64,000 nucleotides of DNA from Eutreptiella sp. 'Long Island Sound 2002'. Its lineage: Eukaryota > Protista > Euglenida. The position numbers were made by a program, and so were the translations under genes. The stretch covers positions 193,812,001 to 193,876,000 of the forward strand of contig OZ038378.1 of assembly GCA_964036045.1 (NCBI GenBank), written 5' to 3'. Below are positions 41,301 to 63,100 of this stretch, in pieces (position 1 is the first letter of the stretch; every line of letters begins with the position of its first letter). Below the pieces are notes generated by a model. It did no database searches and was not told where the DNA came from. It saw only the letters and a program-made list of their open reading frames with translations.

Positions 41301-43526
41301 ATGGAGAAGAGACGGGCCTGCGAAGAAATCATGGGACATCGGACTGAGACCGCAGTTCAATGACATTTGCAGACAACTTCTGACGGAGAAAGGAGAGCCT
41401 CCGAATGTGGGCGCAGATGAACACCGGGGCCCATGCGGTGGGAGGACGGTATGACTGCGCGTGACGTGCATTATCAAAACAGAACAGGCCCGCCCAACGG
41501 CAGACATGATCCGACGAAGGCCCATGCAACTGAGCCCTGCGTGGAACGCGCCTCATTCCGACCGAGTTCAGCTCCCCAACGCACGGGTGTCACAAGTCCG
41601 GTCCAAACCGTGTACGCCACAGACCCTGACCGTGACCTTTGTGGGGGTGGGCACATCCGCCCGTGGCGGGTCCAGGCCACCAGCAGCGATGCATCTTCGG
41701 CAAGGCTGGAGACGCGAAAGGAACAAAACGGGGGGATGCTGCCGCGGGCATACCGCTGCACGCCATACCACGGCAGGCGGCAGGCGGTACAACACGAAAA
41801 GCACCTTTTGGGGGGAACAATTGCACAAATCGCCAGTGAGAGCCCGCAGGACCCTCGACACAGCTACCGATCCCCCAGGGGGGGCGTTTCTGCACAGCGC
41901 GCGCGCAGCGCCCAACAGCAAGTTAGCTCTCCCGTGACCACCCTGAAAACTACCCACCACCGGGGAAGCTACGTCCACAGGGCAAAAACAGCAGATTTAG
42001 ACAGCAATCTGGCATTATTTATGGGGGAAATAGTTTGTGTAAATCATTATCTGAGTTTGTGGACTGAGTAAGAATCTGAGCAGTCCTGTGTCTGGGAATA
42101 CAGTAGGACCTGCGGTCACCTTGGCCATCGGGGAAAATGGGTCCAAAATAGCCTACTTTTCGCACAGCGCGGGCACAGCGCACGGTGAGCCCCCTAAGGC
42201 CGTCCTTAGTGAACAAAAAGGGCGGGGGGCGGGGGGATGTCTCATTCTGAAAGGACAGGTCCGGTGCGGGGGCCGCATGTCGGTAGCATGGTTGAGGGAC
42301 TGGTGCAGGGCCGACCCACAGGCTGTTCTGAAGCCCAGCCCCGGGGGCTCTGTCATGACCGACCCCAGCGCCCCTCCGGTCCACACACAGGCACACAACC
42401 CACCCCAGCTCCCACGCAGCCCCCTCAACACTGCTGGTGGCAGTGGGGGTGGGGCGATGACCCTGTGCACCTGCATCGGTGCATGCTCATGCCGGAGTGT
42501 AGTGTGCATCAGGTGCACACAGCCACCCCCCGGTCGCCAAAGGGTGCGCTTGACGGGGAGGCGGGCTATTGCGGGGTTTCACGGGTGGTTTCAAAGGCGG
42601 CTCCCGGCGGTTGGCACAAGCGGTTGGGATGCAATGTCTGGTGGGTGCAGGCCAATTGAAGGGCCGTGGAGGGCGGTTGGCAGGGCTGACGGCCTCCCCA
42701 AAGAGGGAGGCCACAGCGAGTCTGCGTTCCTTCTGTTTCGACAATTGTAAATCGACCGGGAGCGTCTGGTCTGAGGTCACGAGACATAAAAAGACCGCAT
42801 TTCAGTGAAATCTGCGCAGGACTTTGCCTGAAAAAGCTGCTGCTGGGGAGCCTCCAAGCGTCCCCAACAAAAGTTCACGAACCCATTGTCACACCGGCAT
42901 CCCCGCGAAACACACCGGCCACTGGCGTCCGCCACGGCGACATGACAAGACGAAGCACGCTCCCACTTGAGCCATGCGTTGAACGCAGCTAAGCCCTACA
43001 GAGCTCCAGGTGTGAAATCAGTGGGTATTGCTGAGTGACACGCGCGACGGGGCTGAGGCTGATTCGGGCGTGCGCTCGAAGGGGAGGGGAGCCACAGCGC
43101 AGAGCAGCGAACGCCTGTAAACTCAGCTGGTGACAACTGAGAGAGCGGTTACAGGAGCGAGCGGTTACAAAGCGGTTGAAATTGCAGTTGGAGTTGGAAG
43201 GAAGCGGTTGGGGAGGGCCTAATACTTATTCCAGAGAGAACGGGGGGGGGTCCCCCTTCGGGTGCAGGCCTGGGCTCATTCCATTCCTAACCAGGGATAA
43301 GGTGAAGTGAGGTTGCCCCAGCGATCTCCGAACGCCACCCTTTACCCCTCGCAGGGTCCTTCCGGCGGGTGGGATCACTGATACCCAAGTGCCCTGGACA
43401 GCCATGTTTCCGGCTTCCAGGGTTTCGAACTGGGCACCTCCGGGCCAGGCGTCAAGTGCATGACGGCTGAACTACGCAACCTCTCCAGTGCCGGGCGTTG
43501 GTGGCGTATCTGCCAGAACACATGTC

Positions 43527-43835
43527 CTACCCCAGAAGGGGCGTCCCAGTCAGGGCTTCCTGGACAAGTGCCAGGAACAGGCCCAGCATCGCCGCTCGGC
43601 CATTCACCAGCTCCGAACGAGCATTCCATGTGCCGCCGGACCGCGACCGGGGGTCCACGTTGTACCGTTGCGCACCTCGTAGCTTTGGCATGAGGCTGGC
43701 CAGAGTCACCAGCCCGGCCACCACGGGAACAGCGATGGGGTTGCTGGCAATCTGCTGCACCATGGTCTGCCCTGTTTGGAGCTCGCTGGCCAGGCCCGCA
43801 ACGAATCCTAACTGCGCAGCGCGGCCGTTGATGGT
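43527..43835 (-). CDS. ELIP: ELIP/CBR-type LHC-like protein, terminal exon (three-helix unit)
   Basis: Two LHC chlorophyll-binding motifs: (E)TINGRAAQLGFVAGLASEL and WNARSELVNGRAAMLGLFLALVQEALTG. Acceptor ctcctgtcctctccacag, stop TAG. Confidence 0.9.
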   Translation of the reverse strand, partial: TINGRAAQLGFVAGLASELQTGQTMVQQIASNPIAVPVVAGLVTLASLMPKLRGAQRYNVDPRSRSGGTWNARSELVNGRAAMLGLFLALVQEALTGTPLLG

Positions 43836-45362: not shown

Positions 45363-45592
45363 CTCTGGCAAAATTCCGTTGAAGGCCATCAGGTCAGCCA
45401 CCGAAGGCTCTTCGCGGACGGATGCCATCTCCGGCATCTCCCCTGATGTGGTGGCCAGGGCGATATTCTGGGATCCCGCAGACAGTGGGCAAGCTAGGCC
45501 ATCGAGGCGATGGCCAACGGAAGAGGCCAGCATCAAAACGCCAGAAGCCACCGCGAGGACCAGAGGGTCATCCTTTTCGCTGGGGAGCTTGC
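45363..45592 (-). CDS. ELIP: ELIP gene middle exon (hydrophobic helix, linker-like NIALATTSGE, then LMAFNGILPE)
   Basis: tgtgcag|GC phase 1; donor GAG|gtgcat phase 0. Splicing yields MAFNGILPE|TINGRAA, matching the ELIP/CBR pattern F-x-G-x-x-P-E-x-I-N-G-R. Confidence 0.85.
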
Positions 45593-47535
45593 CTGCACAT
45601 TGATGCATGTGCGTGATCCGGCCTGCCCTGCCCCGGGACACTGGTAGGGCATCAGCATGCTCAGGGAGTAACCGACCGACTGCACACCCTCCCCATAATG
45701 CATCCCCGCCCAATATTTACCAGGGTGGTCCATAACTTAAAACAGGAAAAAAGAAAAAAGGAAAATGGGTGACCATACAGGCAGTCATATTCGGGCGGCA
45801 GCGGACGGCGGTTCGAGGACAACTGGCGGCGGTTGAGCGGTTGTTTTGGGTGCTCCCTAAGAGGGCTCCTTAGCCCAAAAGAAAAAAAGGAAAGACGGGC
45901 TGATAAAAGAGCGCCCTAGGATTCACACCCACCGTGGCTGGTGAAGCAATGTGCCAGAACTTATCCCCCCCAAAGCAAGCAAACAAAAACATAAGAAGGG
46001 CTTAGAAAGCGAGGGTGATCCCACTACGACAGCCCTGCATCGCCCAGGATCGCATTGTCACTCGCAAAACTCAGTAAATGTTGTTTGTTTCTCGGTGCCG
46101 GAAACCTGGCAGATGCACAGCTACAGCCACTGATTTATTATTACTGTATTTACTGTATTTAGACTGTATTTAGACTCCTATTGGGCAATTGGACGGAGGT
46201 TGTACCCAAGGGACAAGATTCCGGGAGGGGACGGGTCATTGATGCAGTGTCGAGCACACAAACACAATCAGCCAGCAACCTGCTGCACTGGCTGTGGAGT
46301 CCGCAGAATCCTGTAGCTGAATGGATCCCTCTTGAACGATGACATTTTTTTTATTTAGGCTCATCGCATTCTATTGGCCCTCGATGCACCACTCCTTCAG
46401 GGAAGAACCACGCAGACAACTACGAACCAACTCTGGACAAGGAGCCAGACCTGGAGCTAGCGTTTGGCCGTGCAAGTGGGGACAAGCGGCACTGGATTGC
46501 GGTGCAATGCAGCGCAGGCATACGCACCGCCACAACAACACCCAATATGGAGAAAAGACACATAAACATACATGTCCTTGTAGTGTGGGGAAGATGGCGA
46601 CAAGCGTAACTGAAGTTTGCATTACGCGGGGACAACCAGCAACCGTGACACCCTAATCAAGCTTTCCTAGGGTCGCCCTCCTCGCCATCGAGCCTTTCCT
46701 ATGGACCTGGGACGGCCGAAGACCAGTGCCCCCCGTCCAATATTTACGACTGGCATGGTCGGTCGCTGGTCGAAATAACGTCTTTGTTTTCTGGGACAAG
46801 CGCTCGCACCAAGTATGGCATGGGCTTGGGAGTGCTGGACATTGGAGCCGTGGCACAGCACCCTGCACTCCATTCAACACGATTTCATCCGGAATGGCGT
46901 CCGCAACCCTTCAACCAACAAGGACCTCTGCCCCTCCATCAGCGCTTTACAGCCCTCAGCGAATCCTGACCACCAAGTGCAAGAGGTCATGCGCAACTCT
47001 CCACAACCCTCCACATTCGTGTGGTGTGTGTGATGCGGTGCGCTGTGGCATGAGGTCTTTGGAATGCCGAGGGACCCGGTGGCCGTTGCTGTGGGGCGAT
47101 GCAACCGAAAGCACAAGTGTACCCGTCAGGCCCCACCACAGGAAGGTCCTTGACAGCTTTCCGTTACACTTCACCAAAAAAATGATGCCCGCGACAACAG
47201 TGGGCAGCCGTGCCGCACCAGGGCACCAACGGCAGTCAACCACCCACCGACAGTAATCGGCGGGCGGCCAATAGCACTTAGTATTCAATTGATATCCGTT
47301 GGCTATTCCGAGAATGGCAGTGACTGCCTAACCGACAACTTTCGCCAGAGAGCCCCCGTGCGGGTGGCTGACAAGTGCCGGTCTCTGGCGGTTTCACCGC
47401 TGGCGGCTGTCCAGAAACCGCCGGCCGGTTCAGAGCGCCGTCCCCAAGGACGGCCCTTAGCAAAAGATAGTGTGCACGCTCCCCCCCACCCCTCCCCCCC
47501 AACCTTAAACTTGGGCGCTCCGCCCCTTGCCCCCG

Positions 47536-47781
47536 GTCTAAAGTTGGCACTTGGGGGTCTAAACTTGGGGTCTAAAGTTGGCACCGGGGGATCTAAAGTT
47601 GGCACTTGGGGCTCCAAATTTGGGGTCTAAAGTTTGCACTTGGGGGTCTAAAGTTGGGGTCTAAAGTTTGCACTTGGGGGTCTAAAGTTGGGGTCTAAAG
47701 TTGGCACTTGGGGGTCTAAAGTTGGGGTCTAAAGTTGGCACTTGGGGGTCTAAAGTTGGGGTCTAAAGTTGGCACCGGGGG
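47536..47781 (+). repeat. Higher-order minisatellite: 21-bp (ctaaagttggcacttgggggt) + 13-bp (ctaaagttggggt) units, ~7 x 34 bp
   Basis: Read directly from the sequence. Lies in an ELIP intron. Confidence 0.92.
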
Positions 47782-48128
47782 CACTACAACAGCAATCGCG
47801 TCAACAGCATGCGGCAGTGTCTGCGATTGGCAGACCGCGTCTACTGGTGGCACACAGTGTCCACAGACTACAGACAGCCATCCCCATGTGCACGGGCAAA
47901 CGTTGTTGTCAAATCTTTTTTGTGAAGGGGACGTTCCTGAATACCGGCTCTTTGCGTCTACAGCACGCCGACGGTGTGTCTGGGTGTGATCATTGCCGTC
48001 CCCTCCAATGTGGGGGCCGCGAGGGCGACTTTGTGCCATACATGACAAAAACAGCAATAACATCTGGGGCTTGACCAACAGCCCTGCCCTGCCTCCCAGA
48101 CCATCCATCCCGAGGGACAAGTGAGTAC

Positions 48129-48354
48129 CTGCTGCAAGCTCTGAGGCGATCTGAGCCACAAACGCCGAGTCTTCGGCCGTGGCCCCATGCGCATCACTGC
48201 GCCCGGAGGATTGGTGGTCCAGCAGGGGTTGCCACTGCTGGCGGGGGGCAGTCCGGCGCAGCATCGCAGCCAGTCCCACCAAAGCCGTGATGCTTGAGGC
48301 CAACGCGGCCCACACCCAGGGCTGTCGCGTGTCCTGCAGCCAGTGTAGGCGGGG
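48129..48354 (-). CDS. ELIP: ELIP gene upstream exon (plastid-targeting hydrophobic stop-transfer segment); true first exon not located
   Basis: WVWAALASSITALVGLAAMLRR (hydrophobic then basic) resembles the euglenid class I stop-transfer segment. Donor GCAG|gtactc is phase 1, matching the next exon. 5' boundary is tentative (ccccag| at 48355). Confidence 0.65.
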
Positions 48355-48559
48355 CTGGGGATAGGGTTGGGGGATGGGCCCAGGGGCACCATGGGGACTT
48401 ACTTGGGGGCTGGGACGGCCGGCGGCAAAAAGAGAAAACCCCGGGAATCCTGGATTACCTGGTTTAAGCCCAACTGGGGGCGGGGTGCACTTGCAGGCCA
48501 CCGAGAGGGGAGGGAGGGCTTGGGGCTGTGGTGCTGGGGGGCTGGGCTGGGAGGCTTGG

Positions 48560-48780
48560 CAGAGATGCATTAGTAGGGAATGGACCTTGGAGGCTGCCCC
48601 AGAAGCGGTTAGACAGGCGGTTGGAGGAGATTGCCAAAGCGGTTGGGGGCAGTTGCTGTCAGAAACAAATGCCATTGAAGCCGGCACTTGGCGTCAGGGA
48701 GACAGTGGCTGGGCATAGGCTGGGGGGGGGGGGCACTGAGGGGGGGCGGGGGTACCTCCCCCCCTTCCAATGCATCCCTG
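48560..48780. mobile_element. Family-2 MITE in reverse orientation, upstream of the ELIP exons
   Basis: cagagatgcattagtaggg ... cccttccaatgcatccctg, flanked by the direct repeat ggcttgg (7 bp). Confidence 0.8.
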
Positions 48781-50899
48781 GGCTTGGGGCGGGACAGGGG
48801 TGCTGCGTGTGACAGGCGCAACCAAGCAGCATGTGTGTCCTCACGCACCAGAAGAGATTGCACGCAGATTAGCAACCCCAACACCCTCGACCCTGTGTCC
48901 CCATCAGCTTTGCCAGAATCTGCACCAAACTTCAGCCATGACCCAACTCCAACAATGTTCAGTACCGATGCCACAGGCACACATGCCCGGCATGCAACCA
49001 CAACACCACTACACAACATGTCCACCGCGCCCTAGTAGTGTGCAGATGCACAAGCACGCTGCAAGCTCTCTACACACCACACGCCCGCCACTCTCCACCA
49101 CCACGTCACGCCGGCCCCCTTGTACACTGACGCGGGTGTTTTGGTCTTACTGCACGCCAACAGACCCACGCCCCCACAGGCTCCACTCAAGAAATACCCC
49201 ACAATATACTGCTTTGCGTTTAAAACCTCCACTGCTGAACTCCACCACAGGGCTACTGCGGCCGCTCATCACCACTGACCCGCGCCACCCGACATGTGGC
49301 CAACCCCCACCGCTGCACGGCATCACCCACCAACCCTATCTGGCAATGCTTGAGATACGCCGGGGCTGGCACGCCGCATGAATGCGGGGCGTGGGGTGTG
49401 GCATGAGGAATGCGGGATGTGAACTTGGGATATGGGGGACGTACAAACTGAGTATTGGGAGGTGGGAGGTGGGGGGATGGGGACGTGGGATAGAGATCTA
49501 ACTCCTCCAGTGCGGCCCCGAAGACCGGGAATCCATGAGGGCCTGGACCCTAAGCCCTTGCCGGGACCTCCTCCCGGTGGAGGGTCGTTCCCAGCCGTGC
49601 GATCTTTCCGCTACGCTCATTCAGGAGAGCCTTGGGTTTTCAGTGGTAATTCACCGACAGCAATTGGCACTCAAGAGACAGCGCTTGCCAACGCCAACTG
49701 GCCCTAAACACCGGCAGCTGTCAGTCAATGGGGGTTTTGTTGAGGCTCGGGCGTACCGGATTGAGGTATGTGATTTCTCTTGATCATGAATACCACCGCC
49801 CTGCACTTTACTTTGTCCTTGTGCCATGTCGTGTACATGCCAGACAGGCACTGGGGCCCTGCCTCACTCCTGTCCCAAAGGTTTTATGGCGTTTGGGGGG
49901 AGGGGCATCCTCTCACGTACACCAAAAATAAACCTAAATGAAGGCAATGACAGGTTTGGTTCGTGCTGCATCGTGCCGCCCCCTTGTCACCGTGTTCCCA
50001 GCCCCACGTCACTTGTTACAACAACAGAACGAAGGTGTGGGGTGGCTACCTGGATGACTGCTGTATTGAGAGGCAACTTGGAGAGGCCGTGGCCCTGAGA
50101 AAACGGTTTGCGATGATCAGCCCTAACGACTGAGACGAATTGGAATGTGACCAGCGACGCACGACCAGCATCAGGCTCTCGGACGTGAGCATGCGACTGG
50201 CAGCAGGTTTCAGCAAGGCGCAGGTGATTTTGGGGAGCGCTCACTTTTCCCAATTCCAAAAGACTGCCAAAAGACGTACCTTGTGGCTGGTGGGCCCTCT
50301 GCCTCGTCTCATGCTGTTGGGAAGCGCCCTTGAAGAGCCCTCCCCTCCTCTCTTCTAGTCTCCCTCCCCTCCCTCCCTCCCTCCCTGCACTTTGTTGCCA
50401 ATGCAAGCAGGTTTTGCAAACTACGGGAGTCCCCCCCCCCCACACTTCACCTCACCTTGTGTTCCACCCCTGCTCTGCCCTTGCCCCCCTCCCTCCCTCC
50501 CTCTGTTTGGCGCTCTGTCCCTCAGCCCCCCCAGTCATGTGCTTAGCAACGGGGGGATGGCCTCTCTTGGGATCCACCCACCCTAGCCAAGACCCACCCA
50601 GCCACCCAAACCCAAAAAAAAATCCTGCAAGAGAAAAATGAAATTTTGAATAGAGAGCCGAAATGAGAGGGCCATCTTAGGTACACAAACTTTTTTTCAC
50701 CTTCAACCTTCAACCTTCAACTATTTTTTTCACCCCCCCCCCCTGCAGGGTAGACCCCATGTCAAGCAAATGACTGCTCCATCGGTCCGTCCGTTCGTCG
50801 CTACTCCCGTCACCTTTGCCCCAAGATGCCTCAATACAAAAACAAACGATGTTGGCAAACGAGACAAGGGGGTCAGACATAAGGAGGAATGATTGATCT

Positions 50900-55800: not shown

Positions 55801-57129
55801 CCATCAATGCGTCGCATTCAGAGTGGGCGTGCTTTGCTTTCAGCCGAACGTAATGCCACCGCCGCCGCAAGCAATTAAATGAGAACACAAGCAGGCACAA
55901 AAGAAAGCACCTTCAAAGGTTACGGAAACAACGGTAGGTGTTGTTTAGACAAGGGATTTGTCTAAACACTGGGATAGGGTGCCAATACAGAGAAGGAATC
56001 CACTCCGATTTCAACTGGGGGGGGGGGGCTGTCTTGTGGAAAACAGCTTCAAATGCTGAGAAGAAGTGCTGCACCCGGAGGGGCGCAGGACAGCCTTACA
56101 CTGATTCTGCGTGTACGGGGTGTGGGCTGGGGGGCCGCGGTCTTTCTATAGCCTTCGATGGCGTCCTTCATCGTTTATGCTAGCATCTCATGGCGGGGAG
56201 TTCAGTTCAGTTCCGGACCCCACCCCTGTGGTGTGAGCAGCTGGGGTTCGGAGAGGGGGGGGGATTCCGACTCTGGGGGTGTTTCTGAATTCCCTGTTTC
56301 ATGCGGAGCATTTTGAACACATACAAATATGGGGGGTGAAATCCCCCTTCACCTCCACCATCCACCACACCTTCATCACATTCATCAGGTCCATCGCTCC
56401 ACAGGCCTCAGCCACAACCGAGCTGGGTGTTTAGATGCCTGGCGCCTGTTGCCCTGTGCACACCTGTTGTTCCCCATTGGCGTACGTTGGGGGGGGGGGT
56501 CTGAAGAGGGGCTGGCCCCCTCCACACATCACTGCTTTGGGTGTAGGAATTCCACCAGACCACAGTCTACATCTACCCCAAAACCCATGCATCCAATGAC
56601 GCACACCTCAGGGGCTGCATTGTCGTGTGCAACATAAACAGCCTGCTGACGCTCGAGTGCCCCTGTCAGCTTGCCTGCACACAAACACGCACACCAGACT
56701 GCAACACGACGGATTCGGAAACAGAATCGCTGCAGAACCCACACCCCCAAAGCCTCCACACACATGTAAAAGAGGACAGATCAGCCAAGCCATCCTGCCA
56801 GTTGTCCAACACACATGACAGCCAGAAATCATCGCGAGGCACAGCCGCCGCCTTGCTGCAATCCACACCGCCCTGTGCCACAGCATGCAGACAGGGCATT
56901 CCAGAGTCCGGTGGTGCGTGTGTTGGCTGCACCACCACAGGCATCTGCAGTCATCACCGTCCTGACATTCTGTGTCTTGGGACCCATGTCTTTGGGGATC
57001 ACAAGAAGCGGACCCACTGGGGCGGCAGTTGGACCCGCTCCAGAAATGGCCGAAGAGGCGGGGGGTCCAGAGGAGGGTGGCGGGGGCTCCAGAGGAGGGG
57101 GATGCCAAAAAAAAACTTCAGACCTGCCA

Positions 57130-60100
57130 CACTCTGAAATTTGTTTCTGCAACCATTATGGACACTCAGGGCACGATGTACTCACGTTGCTTTCTGTGCA
57201 CCAATCGTCACGTTGGGATATCTGGTGTTCCGCTGTTGGTTTTGGTGGACCCTGGCGTCAATGCTTAATTTGGGCCAAGACACAGGGTCATTCGGCAGAT
57301 CCGTAGCGTGGAGAGCTGGGCCAACACGCTTTTACTGGTTTGAAAGGACAAAGAACGTGATGCGCCACGGAGGTGTGTTCGGATTGTCGATAGATCCCCA
57401 TATAGTTGGGTGTTGTAGCCACGTTGAAAGCGTCCCGGTTTGCACTCCTATGTGTGACGAATCAGAGCAGTTTGCCAAAAGTGCATAAGGTGTCATACTT
57501 GCTCCACTAGCAGCACCCTTTGTCAGGGTGCACCCAGAAAGCTCACAATGGAATGAATAATTCAAATGCGAGTGAAAATACGGGGGCAAGAAACGACCCC
57601 TTCGGCTTCAATTTTCATCGGAGTACGAATCAAACATACAATACCGGCATCGTCGACATGTACTTTGGTCAAGTCGACGTCAGCTGGCAACTACGGGCGG
57701 AGGGGTTGATCAACACTGTCTGGCCCCACCTTTGGTGCAGCGGGAAAACACCGCGGCGTCCAGCCCTCCGTCCAGCTTTGTTTTTTTTGTTTGTGCACAA
57801 AACCATGCAGGAGCCATCCACAGAGGCAAGCAGGCGAGCACGCATACACGCAAGGCTGCAGGCACGTGTGCAGGCATGTAGGCGTGCAGGCGTGCGTCTG
57901 TGAGGGACTGCACTGAGGCACCAATGCAGGCATACAGGCAGGCCTGCATCCGCGCAGCCGCTCACGCACATCAACATGTGATGTGCAAGCGCATACGGCA
58001 TGCAACACACGGCGGGCGGGCAGACATGCCCACTCTTTGGCACGTCCTGTTTATGAAGGGACCAGGTTCGCCCGTTGGGGTGTGGGCCCGTGGCACGTGC
58101 TGTTGCTGATGCCGCAGCCCGCAGTCTGCGAATCGGGGCTAGCACAGGGTGTGTGGCGAAGAGTTTGGCTTTCGACGTCCGGGAAGGGGACGTGGGGGGA
58201 CACCTGCATGCAAGCCACTTCTCGCAGCACCAACACGGGAACCCGCCGGTACACCAGTCTTCATTGTGGGCGGATTGGTGGCCATTGCCTGTGAATGCAA
58301 ATGGGGTTGGCCACCTCGGGCCCCCGCACAAAGCAACCGAATCAGCCCCCAACCGACCTCCACGCGCACCCCGCAAGGGTCCCAAACGCCGCGGCCGTGG
58401 TTGGCAAAACGGACCTTGACGCACCCAAACAGAAGGCCCGTGCTCCCTTGTGGATCGGCCCTCACCCACTGTCCTCCCTCACTTCCACGACCCCACCATC
58501 GTTTGGGGCGGGGTATCACTGCGTCTGGGACCTTAACACGCTGCGCTCTGGGTGGAAGGTGGCAAGGGGGTCGGTTTCAAGGTGAAGCATTGGGTTCTTG
58601 GGGTTGATACAAAGCCACGGGCGGCTTTGTTCGTCACAGCGCTCGTGGCTCTGGGTCTGCTTTAGACATTACCGAATGTTTGCGCGCTTCGATTCAAATC
58701 ACCCGCGGGTTCTCTTATGTGCCATAAATAAACAATACAAGGAGCTGTTGTGGCCCTTGGATTCCACGGATTGTACGAAAATCTCGAAGGCTGATGGCCT
58801 GGTATAGGTAATTTCTGCCACTAAGCTGTGGCTTGGGTGGGGTGTTGTAGCCTCATCATAGTGTACGGAGAGACTCGAACTAGGTTCATTCCGACCGTGG
58901 AAAGGCATCGGGTGTGTGATGATTCTGATTTCTTAGATAGTGTTCGTGACATGGCTTCAATGTCGACACTAGGAGTGCACTACACCTCACATGAGTAAGT
59001 GACTGAGCAGTGGCGGTTTTTCGGCAAGTCTCGGGTGCTCATGTCCTTCGTGTTCCATTTTGTGCGTCAGGAGTAGCCGGGCAGCCATTCCGCCTCCTCA
59101 TTGAGAGGATTCCATTCATCACTGTGGTTTGTTTCCGGGATTTTATGACCTTTGTTTGCCGATCATACTGGGGGTTTGGGGACGGTCGTCTGTCCTCCGA
59201 ACTAGAGCCAACGGGCTTTTTTGGGTTTTCATGGTTCGGGTTCTCTTTGGGCTGGGAAATCGTAGCATTTGAGTAGACCCCCCTTAGACAGGGGGGACAC
59301 CGTGGTGCGGGCGAGGCCCAGCCAGGCCGCCGACAACCCCACTTCCCTTGCATGTCATACTTCAGGATTGACTCATGGCACATGTCTTCGGAGCCATCGC
59401 ACACACCCAAGGGAGGGGCCAAAATGCTCCCCCCCCCCCCCATGGGTGGGCTGTGGAGTGCATTACCTCTAGTTTGCATTTGTCCGTTTTTTCATGAGGT
59501 CTCAACCCCCCCCCCCCTAGGTGTGGTGACAGAACTTTCAGGGTGTGGGTGTGGGCTATGGGTTGAGGCTATGATTGTGTGAGTGGAAAGGCTGCTGGCA
59601 TTTTTTGTTGGCAGTTGCACTCCTCGCAGATGAGCAAAAATTGATTCCGCTTCCATATGTCACAGCAAAATTTTAGTTCGCAGTTTGTAGTTGGCAAAAG
59701 AGTGCACTGAAACATCAAGCACAAATTCGCGTGCACGGACATACGTGGACGGCTTGTGGCTTTGGGTTGGAGTCGTACACGACGACCGCGACACATAGCA
59801 TCGCAACCACGGCACCCACGGATGCCCATGGCGGTTTTGAAAGGATGTGCAAGGGACAACGGCAACCTATGCGGTATGGAGACGCCTCTGGACCAATGAT
59901 CAACCAAGGGGACGGCACAAAAGGGGGGAGGGGGTTCGGTGAAGGTCCGATCCACGATCTGCGGCGATCCATTGGAGGGTTATGGCAAGGGTGCAATCTA
60001 CGATCCATAAATCAAAAATTCACTTTTTTTTTCCAATGTATCCAATACAAGCATTTAATTGTGTTGTCGCTGTGACGGCGAGTTGGAAAATTTTTCTGCA

Positions 60101-63100
60101 ACGCAATGTCATCCACGATGACATTTTCATTGTCGAGGTGCTTTTGAAAAACAAGTTCGGCAAGGATGAAGCAAAAAATAATGCACAACACATTATTGCA
60201 AATCATTGATCCACCCATGTTTTCAAGAAAAAACAGCACACCGGTGCTGCGGTGTGGCATGGAACGACAACAACGTACTGTGTTGATTTAGATAATCGAA
60301 GTTGAGAGGAAACAAGATGGGTCAATCACCGGGTGCGCTTTTTATCTTCCAAAGTAATTTATTGTCCAAATTGTCCATTCCGGTGGCCGAAACGGGGTTT
60401 TGAGCTCGTTTTGAGTGGCGGGCGGGGTTGCGGCCGTGTCCGATACGCGATCGGGGGAGGAGGGGAGTTTTAGGAGGGGATCCAATCCACGATTTGGGGT
60501 AGGCTTAGCCCCCCAAACACTTCAACGGCAACTTCGCGTGAAAACTCTCAGATGCTCAAAACGATGCCCCTCCAAAGGGGACTAGGTGAGGCGATCCGTC
60601 GCGGATCATGGTGGTGGAACCCCCCCCCCCCCGGTCCGGATCATGGATCGGACATGGAGGTGGAAACCCCCCCCCCTTCCTACCCTCCGAAATGGATCAA
60701 ACCCCAAAAAACCTCCAAAAAGCCGCGCCGCGCCGCACATGATGCCAATAGCCCCAACCTCACCAAGTCTTACACCAACGGGCACACAACAAAGCTTCTT
60801 CTAAGGTCATGAGGCAAGTTCTTCAATTGCAACCAAGTAACAACATCAAGTACGTGAGAAAGTTGTTGTTGGACAAAAGTTCTTGATGTAACAAATTCAA
60901 AACGTTTGCAATTATTGCTTGGCGACAATGTTGTTGATCTATAATAGAGTTCTACCCCCCCCCCCCCCATGCCTGTAGAACCACCAGCCGAAGCCATTTA
61001 TAAGACCCACCTCCTTTTTCGGCCCTCCCCGGCAAAGATAGGCAAAGATAGCTAAAAGACCCACTTTCAAAAGACCCTTTATAAGACCCACCCAAGAAAA
61101 TTTTGCGCAGCACAGGGAAATGAAGGAAAAGTGACCTCAACCTTGTCGCGAACCCCTGCAACCCTGCAGCCCTGCAACCATTGAGCACCCGTAGGTCCTC
61201 GACAAGCTACGAGCCACATCCATCGTCATCTGCCTAGTATCCGTCGCACGTTTGCATGTGTGGGCATTTTCCGGATCAGCAAAGTATAAGACCCACTCCC
61301 AGAACACCACTATATAAGACCCACTCGCCCGGGCTCCGGGACAAAAAATTATAAGACCCGGGTCTACGGGGGTGTTCCTACGGGGGTGGGTTGAACAACC
61401 CCTCCCCCCCCCCCACTTGGCTGGCCACGGCTGGCCAAAAATGGAGGGGGGGGAAATTTGGCCAAAATCAAGGAAAATGAAGAAAAAACGGCCAAACTTG
61501 GGGTCCCTAGGGGTGCAAGCCACCCCCTTTTGACTTGCGGCTATGTATGCTACTGCATTTGGGGCAACTAGGTTGTGTGGCCTCTTTTTAAGTGCGAAAT
61601 GACCCCCCTCCCTCCCATGCTCAATATCACGTGCAGCTGAAGACACACAATGTGGCATAGACATAATGCAAAGTCATCTCCATACACCGAGCCCTCGTCA
61701 TCAGCAGTGACCTCCTGACATGACAAACGTAGGTGCATGGTGAGGAAATTGTACCAATACCTGCAGCACAGTCATCATCATGTAATCTTAAGAGGCAAAA
61801 TGCAAAAATGCAAGGCCCAACACAATATGGTGGCTAGACGGTTGGGTGGCTGGGTGACAAGGTGGCTGGTTGGGTGGCTGGGTGGTTGGGTAGCTGGGTG
61901 GCTGGGCGGCTGGGCGGCTAGACCCCCCCCCCACTGACCGGAACACGCCCTACAGGCACGGGGGGGGGGGTAACTTCTTGATCCAAAAATCACAATGAGG
62001 AAAGGCATTAATGAAGAACAAAGTTCTGTGGTCAACAAATTTATGCAACAAACTTAATTCTTGATCCAAAAAAGATGCTACAAAGAACAAAGCAGTTCAT
62101 TCGGGGAAAAAAAAGGAGACAAGGCCAATGTTGTTCACATAGAGGGCGCCCTGGACGCGGGGGGGACGCGGGGAGGGCATGAAATTGGCCGTTTTCAAGG
62201 GACCTAGACATGCAACTATTTTTGGGGTTTTGGCATGGCTTATGCCCTCCTAGGCCCTCCTATCCTTCAATACAACAGAAAACAACACAGGATGGCCCTT
62301 TGGATCGCAACCATCCACTGGAATCCTATGCCACAACATGTACACGGCGTTGCAACTCACATGTACACATGTCCTTCAGCAACGACAAATAGCCACAAAA
62401 ACAAAAGCTTTAGCATTCCGAGCGAAAGGCATGACGACAAAAAATAGTTCAGGTCCCATCCGGAGACATAGTGTGGCGCGCAAAAAGAAAGAAATAAATG
62501 ATCCTAGAATGCATGTTGTTAAAAAAAAGGTTAGAAGCCCAATCGGGGATGTAGTCTTCTTGCAAAATATTTGCCCAATCAATGTGCACCAAGCAATGAC
62601 GAAGGAACAAAAAGTGGCCATATTGTTCAAAAAAAATCTGTGGGGCAACAAAACTTGAACCATCTCTTGGGGCTCTTCCCTATGGGTTGTAATCAAGACA
62701 AATATCATCGTTTTCACGGTACGCGGGGGATGATGCGGGGGGGACGCGGGGAGGGCGCCCTCATAATTGTAACAATGTACACCACCAATTAGCAAACATA
62801 TGCACAGCAAACGAGCTAGGGCTCGGTAACAATGGTAGCGGGCTTGCGATCATAGTGGAGCACAGAAGAGAATGGGAGAACGAAACACCTTCGGTATGGA
62901 ATTCTCCGAAAGTTGGATTTTCCGTCGTGCCACGGAGTGACGCCATTTCTACCGTGTAGGCCATGGCTAAACAAACCGTCTTGGTCAAAGAAATGAAATG
63001 TACCAATCCTTATAACAATCGATGTGATACAAGCACAAAGCTTTGGGTCTACGAAAAGTGGCCCAGCCGCTCGTGTCATGGCTTTGCATTGTGTTATGTT

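Follow-up and report, generated by a model that had tools for sequence, protein, structure and literature searches.

An ELIP gene in eight exons

The window analyzed here, a stretch of 64,000 nucleotides from the euglenid Eutreptiella sp. 'Long Island Sound 2002' (assembly GCA_964036045.1, contig OZ038378.1, positions 193,812,001 to 193,876,000 of the forward strand), carries the gene of an early light-induced protein (ELIP). The precursor encoded by this gene involves, ahead of the intact ELIP, a segment that we interpret as a degenerate partial copy (relic) of the same protein. When transcript L001, a 1235-nucleotide contig of a JGI metatranscriptome, was aligned to the window by blastn, the gene was found on the minus strand, where it extends over eight exons from 62980 to 43451 and is trans-spliced to a spliced leader. 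All introns in this alignment have GT-AG ends. The product of L001 is a protein of 379 amino acids (P0001), which matches the spliced gene exactly. P0001 was retrieved by a word search with the translation of exon 6, and this stored natural sequence was used throughout for whole-protein analyses; exons were never joined by hand. The gene consists of the following parts:

62889..62980, minus strand: exon 1, with the spliced-leader acceptor (ccaag/acgg), the 5' untranslated region and the start codon (ATG 62964-62962); blastn of L001
59745..59866, minus strand: exon 2, with the first hydrophobic segment (residues 38-56, 59831-59775), a putative signal peptide; blastn, hydropathy
58204..58288, minus strand: exon 3, transit-peptide-like region; blastn, GT-AG ends
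56607..56674, minus strand: exon 4, transit-peptide-like region; blastn
50050..50094, minus strand: exon 5, transit-peptide-like region; blastn, and an RNA contig of run X2 that links exon 5 to exon 6
48129..48333, minus strand: exon 6, with the second hydrophobic segment, an unconserved spacer and the first part of the presumptive degenerate copy; blastn, RNA contigs, hydropathy
48315-48259, minus strand: second hydrophobic segment (residues 139-157) in exon 6, a putative stop-transfer anchor; hydropathy
45363..45592, minus strand: exon 7, with the rest of the presumptive degenerate copy, a spacer, the linker motif and the ELIP N-terminal region up to ...ILPE; blastn, RNA contigs
43451..43835, minus strand: exon 8, with the ELIP from TINGR to the stop codon (TAG 43529-43527) and the 3' untranslated region
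45368-45363 plus 43835-43779, 43739-43680 and 43613-43545, minus strand: helices 1, 2 and 3 of the intact ELIP

The 5' end of L001 reads TTCG, of which the first three bases (TTC) are non-genomic, and the genome just upstream of the genomic start of L001 shows a pyrimidine tract followed by AG. These properties fit spliced-leader trans-splicing and thus a complete 5' end. RNA contigs from two further metatranscriptome runs of other studies contain the 43835/45363 joint and leave the introns uncovered, and an RNA contig that ends at 45596 carries a 9-nucleotide overhang identical to the end of exon 6 (exon 6/7 joint). In the 'organism A' runs, the library kind of which is not on record, the introns are covered continuously, as DNA would cover them. 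The original prediction, which had been made from the letters of the sequence, had assumed two splice junctions (ELAAG/KLPSE and ILPE/TINGR). Both are genuine: they have GT-AG ends and are present in L001 as well as in the RNA contigs of two other runs. The same prediction had let an exon start at 48354, which has to be corrected to 48333 (21 nucleotides less). It had also placed the copy right behind the protein start, and here it had missed five upstream exons reaching to 62980, which add 132 residues including a signal-peptide-like segment.

The nearest relatives of P0001 are P0005 from Eutreptiella gymnastica and P0007 from Euglena gracilis (EG_transcript_20211). P0007 is 53-61% identical and its best match in the studied genome is the window gene, which suggests that the window gene is its single-copy orthologue. 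The public gene calls P0002, P0004 and P0006 (on a 2.5-Mb ENA contig) represent exons 6, 7 and 8 as separate open reading frames running into the introns, and thus the deposited annotation misses the spliced ELIP gene. Transcripts of the organism carrying the gene were present at 95-100% identity in estuary metatranscriptomes of four studies (runs X1-X4), which suggests that this euglenid, whose genome is large, lives in the environment as an estuarine species.

Two introns of the gene contain repeats. In intron 6 (window 47535-47775), there is a tandem array of a 34-nucleotide unit (GGGGTCTAAAGTTGGCACTTGG...) with 5.5 copies at 96% identity, and in the non-RNA 'organism A' runs X5 and X6, this array is covered hundreds to thousands of times more deeply than its flanks. 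This extreme depth suggests that the unit is highly repeated genome-wide. A G-rich stretch of intron 5 (window 48533-48700) shows extreme contig depth in X5 and X6 and a depth of 400-560 in two metatranscriptome runs. Being deep in both sets of libraries, it appears to be a dispersed repeat that also shows in RNA libraries.

The C-terminal part of the precursor is an ELIP of the usual kind. Residues 263-379 matched the Pfam profile PF00504 (Chloroa_b-bind) with 37.5-41 bits versus a gathering cut-off of 22.3, and of the three open stretches that were translated, only 43835-43527 matched this profile. A pattern search located PETINGR at residue 276 and ELVNGR at residue 352, and hydropathy placed the middle helix at residues 310-329. 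Like the three-helix ELIPs of green algae and plants (PF00504), these 117 residues thus have two ExxNGR helices, a middle helix and the LAS-x-x-P sequence; they share 40-48% identity with algal ELIPs. In the AlphaFold2 model, three long helices make up the ELIP part; Foldseek matched it best to LHC chains of the PDB, although these matches were weak and generic. What sets the precursor apart from ordinary ELIPs, which have a transit peptide of 30-60 residues, is an N-terminal extension of 262 residues that includes the relic unit.

Hydropathy analysis of P0001 revealed five hydrophobic segments (residues 38-56, 139-157, 210-228, 310-329, and 352-378). Between the first two lies a transit-like stretch of 82 residues rich in Ala, Gly, Pro, Ser, and Thr. 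Together with this stretch, segments 38-56 and 139-157 look like the signal peptide and the stop-transfer anchor of a class I euglenid presequence. For such presequences, hydrophobic domains have been reported at residues 9-60 and 97-130 (10.1101/573709). The putative signal peptide of P0001 falls within the first range, the second hydrophobic segment lies slightly past the second range, and the third segment (residues 210-228) is the helix of the relic. The overall order of the precursor is as follows: signal-peptide-like segment, transit-like stretch, second hydrophobic segment, relic (residues 187-232), spacer, linker nonamer (residues 244-252), and three-helix ELIP.

The degenerate ELIP copy and its conservation

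The relic is encoded in two parts, which are separated by intron 6:

48129..48171, minus strand: first part of the degenerate copy, with the sequence DSAFVAQIASELAAG (residues 187-201), derived from the second half of helix 1
45498..45592, minus strand: degenerate copy part 2 (residues 201-232), loop with an invariant DP and remnant of helix 2 (residues 210-228)

When residues 160-262 of P0001 were compared with residues 263-379 by BLASTP, 14 of 37 aligned positions were identical (E 8e-5 for this single comparison). The Smith-Waterman score of the relic against the ELIP was 58 versus a shuffle mean of 27-29, and only 1-3 of 5000 shuffles reached 58. For these controls, the sequence was shuffled either globally or within windows of 6 or 10 residues, and the latter procedure preserves hydrophobic blocks. 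Similar results were obtained when the relics of the three orthologues (P0001, P0005, P0007) were compared with four euglenid ELIP domains: z-values ranged from 4.7 to 8.8, with at most 1 in 1000 shuffles as good. The Eutreptiella relic (P0005) could be aligned to the ELIP over 46 residues without any gap. In a profile-profile comparison (hhalign), the three relics matched 40 non-euglenid ELIPs with a probability of 82% and an E-value of 1.1e-5 over 60 columns, which span from GFVA of helix 1 to LAS-x-x-P after helix 2. The best single match of the relic was a green-alga-type ELIP (P0012), with Smith-Waterman scores of 68-82 and a gapless alignment of 40 residues.

The likeness could in principle be accidental, or it could arise simply from membrane segments rich in alanine and leucine within a targeting sequence. 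It fits this explanation that the general Pfam profile for LHC proteins (Chloroa_b-bind) found no match even at E 10 in the relic region (P0001:130-262); in the exon translations, the intact ELIP alone was hit. The search of the isolated segment with this profile, which the original prediction had proposed as a check, thus did not detect the copy. A protein-atlas feature search with residues 183-253 also returned nothing usable, and the single pairwise alignment covers no more than 37-42 columns. However, the window shuffles that keep the local composition almost never reached the observed score, and z-values of about 0 were obtained for the N-terminal parts of these proteins that hold their other two hydrophobic segments. 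Moreover, the match between relic and ELIP is collinear and recurs in three species, and the profile-profile match to unrelated ELIPs holds. We therefore consider a chance likeness hardly credible; the shuffle controls, the hhalign result and the P0012 alignment appear to have largely refuted it. With these z-values of about 0, derivation of the first two hydrophobic segments of the precursor from ELIP helices was rejected as well.

Taken together, these sequence comparisons indicate that residues 187-232 are a true and old partial ELIP relic, in which the second half of helix 1 is followed by the loop and by helix 2. The original prediction had described the upstream segment as an ancient degenerate ELIP copy, and this view is borne out by BLASTP, the shuffle tests, hhalign, and the recurrence in orthologues. 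The shuffle test on the likeness to ELIP helices 1-2, which had been proposed together with it, gave a score that only the 1-3 of 5000 shuffles mentioned above attained. The predicted absence of helix 3 from the copy was confirmed, and it is also missing from the relics of the orthologues, none of which (0 of 3) has an ExxNGR motif. The proposal that SDAHGAT represents an altered E-x-x-N-G-R motif found no support. The stretch concerned was at shuffle level in two of three orthologue pairs (z -0.8 and -0.7), and the value for the third pair rests on a 9-residue overlap. The relic simply lacks the motif.

The AlphaFold2 model of residues 130-379 shows two relic helices (residues 185-199 and 210-227) with a predicted local distance difference test score (pLDDT) of about 90. 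The input alignment of this model held 44 sequences, of which only three rows cover the relic, and the model cannot decide among the readings of the relic's fate discussed below.

To define the degree of conservation, we determined the amino acid identity per segment between the three orthologues and expressed it as z-value versus shuffles; this measure was used in place of dN/dS.

Leading region: identity 29-50%, z 0.1-1.9
Second hydrophobic segment: identity 26-32%, z -0.1 to 1.4
Stretch before the relic: identity 17-56%, z -0.8 to 2.3
Relic core: identity 43-49%, z 7.8-9.2
Spacer after the relic: identity 17-33%, z -0.4 to 0.6
Linker: identity 27-45%, z 2.6-4.5
ELIP domain: identity 54-59%, z 22.5-31.4

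It can be seen that the relic core is conserved almost like the mature ELIP and that it lies between unconserved flanks. For a relic of this age, such a pattern points to purifying selection, and the relic predates the split of Eutreptiella from Euglena. A comparison of the degenerate unit between orthologues had been proposed together with the original prediction, and its outcome is the conserved core between flanks at about shuffle level. Word-based protein searches with P0001 and with a four-sequence alignment yielded no orthologues beyond the set obtained by exhaustive search, and a scan of metagenome loci returned only three distant ELIP or HLIP-like loci. For another euglenid ELIP precursor (P0153), we considered that its presequence might be a further-decayed relic, but this likeness was not significant (z about 1.7).

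The linker motif and related euglenid precursors

Only 11-16 residues separate the end of the relic from a short motif in the three orthologues. In the window, this motif is located as follows:

45438..45464, minus strand: linker or processing motif IALATTSGE (residues 244-252), of the same nonamer type as the linkers of the RbcS and LHC polyproteins of this genome

The nonamer type can be written as h-A-h-x-x-x-[S/T]-G-x, and its consensus was read from the RbcS and LHC arrays of the genome itself. The RbcS linkers are WAMAGTTGEKD and TWAVTGEKE, and the LHCII linker is SPVAMFAASGR. The RbcS linker of Euglena longa (NMAAMTGEKD; PMC4938576) is also similar to IALATTSGE, but it is two residues shorter between A and G. 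The original prediction had regarded NIALATTSGE as a polyprotein-type linker, and the agreement of the nonamer with WAMAGTTGE of RbcS and VAMFAASGR of LHC in the same genome sustains this assignment. Each of the four euglenid ELIP precursors found carries the motif once, 30-37 residues ahead of PExINGR:

P0001, studied organism: IALATTSGE
P0005, Eutreptiella: IAMMTLSGG
P0007, E. gracilis: IAIWATTGE
P0153: LALLAVSGE

Outside the euglenids, the motif pattern was found in 3 of 145 homologues, where its position is unrelated, and about 1% of P0001 shuffles contained it too; since the pattern was written after the sequences had been seen, these occurrence figures are descriptive only. The class I presequence of P0153, which is of the ordinary kind, also ends with this motif. 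The motif thus probably marks the start of the mature unit, and by itself it would not prove release of a second unit.

The polyprotein arrays that supplied the linkers have properties of their own. In the two RbcS arrays (G000:C11:15694405-15700407 and G000:C14:2150426-2159031; L016-L025), the open frames run without interruption over 1693 and 1642 residues, and linkers of two types alternate. Well over 100 further RbcS fragments are scattered across all chromosomes; many of them are 81-residue open frames restricted to profile positions 49-97, and the fragments resemble dispersed partial retrocopies. The LHCII frame (G000:C9:43682042-43695781; L028-L035) comprises 4424 residues with a unit about every 730 nucleotides, and this far exceeds the 'up to five units' described for the LHC polyproteins of E. 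gracilis.

The ELIP precursor shares several properties with the RbcS and LHCI/LHCII polyproteins of euglenids. There is one open reading frame with an N-terminal extension for targeting to the endoplasmic reticulum and the plastid, it has repeated modules of the LHC superfamily, and a short h-A-h-x-x-x-[S/T]-G-x motif stands ahead of the mature unit. A parallel in arrangement is an RbcS polyprotein of E. longa, in which a linker and a canonical unit come after a degenerate, highly divergent unit (PMC4938576). In contrast to the polyproteins, the ELIP precursor has a single intact unit and the other is cut down to about 46 residues. Unlike polyprotein units, the relic has no pigment motifs and no linker on its N-terminal side. 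Moreover, large introns interrupt the ELIP gene, in contrast to the long open frames of the RbcS and LHC arrays in this genome.

The precursor also resembles class I and class IB presequences in its hydrophobic segments 38-56 and 139-157, in the transit-like stretch between them, and in the presence of a third segment. Class IB presequences have a third hydrophobic domain (PMC2920757; 10.1101/573709), but the third segment of the ELIP precursor appears to be the remnant of helix 2 of the cargo and not a lumen-transfer signal. Unlike usual presequences, the relic segment is conserved in sequence across euglenid orthologues.

Among the JGI metatranscriptome proteins, we found a protein of 728 residues (P0157 / P0015) with three intact ELIP units in tandem. 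Like the studied precursor, P0157 has its ELIP units in one open reading frame, and they are preceded by motifs of the LAMLGLSGE- and VAMLAVGG-type. Unlike in that precursor, all units are intact and there is no detectable relic. Helix 3 of P0157 has NSR, as in Eutreptiella gymnastica. No account of this protein was found in the literature searched, and it appears to be an undescribed ELIP polyprotein.

The genome contains a second ELIP-like gene (L007; G000:C21:2886930-2890073, minus strand, open reading frames 1474-1710 and 471-752). The exons of this gene correspond to the C-terminal domain of a protein of 680 residues, P0035, whose cluster has a member from Euglena mutabilis. P0035 consists of a signal-peptide-like start, about 450 coiled-coil-like residues, a membrane helix, and an ELIP-like three-helix domain, the third helix of which has NGQ in place of NGR.

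Possible fates of the relic and their meaning

We favor the reading that the relic is a cleaved, cargo-derived delivery or anchor module of the N-terminal extension, and our confidence in it is about even. The original prediction had put forward two fates, a di-protein that releases a two-helix peptide and an old ELIP duplicate recycled into the targeting or stop-transfer region, and the present results speak in part for each. The ancestor would have been a tandem ELIP precursor of the euglenid LHC/RbcS kind. Since euglenids routinely encode proteins of the LHC superfamily in tandem, an ancestor with two ELIP units is presumably the simplest source of the relic. The first unit of this ancestor would have lost its pigment-binding parts, and what survived would now be the last section of the N-terminal extension, which would be cut off at the linker motif inside the plastid. 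The relic may have been kept because its amphipathic helix and its membrane helix serve as transit and stop-transfer-like anchor for a very hydrophobic cargo. It would bind no pigment and would not persist as a separate thylakoid protein.

One argument for such a cleaved module comes from E. gracilis. In P0007, the relic starts 9 residues after the signal-peptide segment and nothing else lies between that segment and the linker, which suggests that the relic itself serves as transit region in this species. EG_transcript_20211 has been listed as an ELIP-like protein of the plastid proteome with spliced leader and signal peptide (10.1101/573709, supplement file 2), and because of its spliced leader, the N-terminus should be complete. 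In addition, no conserved cleavage or linker motif was found N-terminal of the relic in the three orthologues, and the relic is devoid of everything that an LHC-type helix pair needs for pigment binding. The occurrence of the linker motif at the end of the class I presequence of P0153 likewise speaks for a targeting role.

Several observations weigh against this interpretation. Transit regions of euglenids have been reported to be unconserved in sequence (10.1101/573709), and the conservation of the relic, which is nearly that of the mature ELIP, calls for a function more specific than generic targeting. In the studied organism and in Eutreptiella, the full set of signal peptide, transit region, and second hydrophobic segment precedes the relic, so that the latter looks superfluous for class I targeting there. 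The helix-2 remnant of E. gracilis is below the hydropathy threshold used, and the predictor of the proteome study assigned EG_transcript_20211 to no presequence class (10.1101/573709). Furthermore, cleavage at the motif is a prediction from sequence, and the two-unit precursor is an inferred ancestor for which a single database protein (P0157) speaks.

The conservation of the relic and the complete class I-like presequence upstream of it, here and in Eutreptiella, would be better accommodated if the precursor were a di-protein. In this case, it would be cut before the relic and again at the linker, and a stable LHC-like peptide free of pigment motifs would be released to exert its own function in the thylakoid. 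We regard such a release as unlikely but worth keeping in mind, and the same cautious estimate applies to the shape and role of the peptide, which would have one short amphipathic helix and one membrane helix and might act, for example, as partner or regulator of ELIP. The relic core is conserved in three orthologues between flanks at shuffle level, it is followed by a polyprotein-type linker, and both of its helices were modeled with a pLDDT of about 90. In addition, the databases contain an ELIP polyprotein with three units (P0157), and in the E. longa RbcS polyprotein a highly divergent unit precedes linker and canonical unit (PMC4938576). However, a conserved processing motif N-terminal of the relic is missing, and in E. 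gracilis the signal peptide and the relic lie too close together to accommodate a separate transit peptide. The relic has lost all known pigment ligands and half of helix 1, and P0153 manages without a recognizable relic. Alternatively, the motif might remain uncut and the mature protein would be an ELIP with extra N-terminal helices; such a changed number of helices would be comparable to PsbS or the two-helix SEPs. This arrangement would agree with the conservation of both relic and motif and with the high confidence at which the relic helices were modeled together with the ELIP in a single chain, but we consider it improbable. The motif agrees with that of bona fide excised linkers in this genome and also ends an ordinary presequence in P0153, and with an uncut motif E. 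gracilis would have no transit peptide at all.

Our search of the accessible literature on Euglena ELIP retrieved no description of this relic architecture, and the E. gracilis orthologue appears in the literature searched only as a line of a proteome table. The architecture can be described as the organization of euglenid polyproteins and presequences applied to ELIP, with a relic unit that appears to be under selection. If the relic were released, it would be a previously unrecognized member of the LHC-like repertoire. It is doubtful that it represents a new kind of LHC-like protein, which with one and a half helices acts alone in the thylakoid; if this were true, it may pair with ELIP or with one-helix proteins, and a decayed unit would have been turned into a photoprotection or assembly factor.

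For the origin of the long multi-part targeting extensions that nuclear genes of plastid proteins acquired in algae with secondary plastids, exon recruitment or random sequence has usually been proposed. With the relic as cleaved targeting module, our favored interpretation, part of such an extension would be traceable to the membrane helices of the cargo itself, by way of a tandem duplication as in the euglenid polyproteins. The polyprotein-type processing motif would also be extended to the ELIP family. The relic would then be a dated and testable case of a decayed polyprotein unit that was reused and has been kept since before the divergence of Eutreptiella and Euglena.

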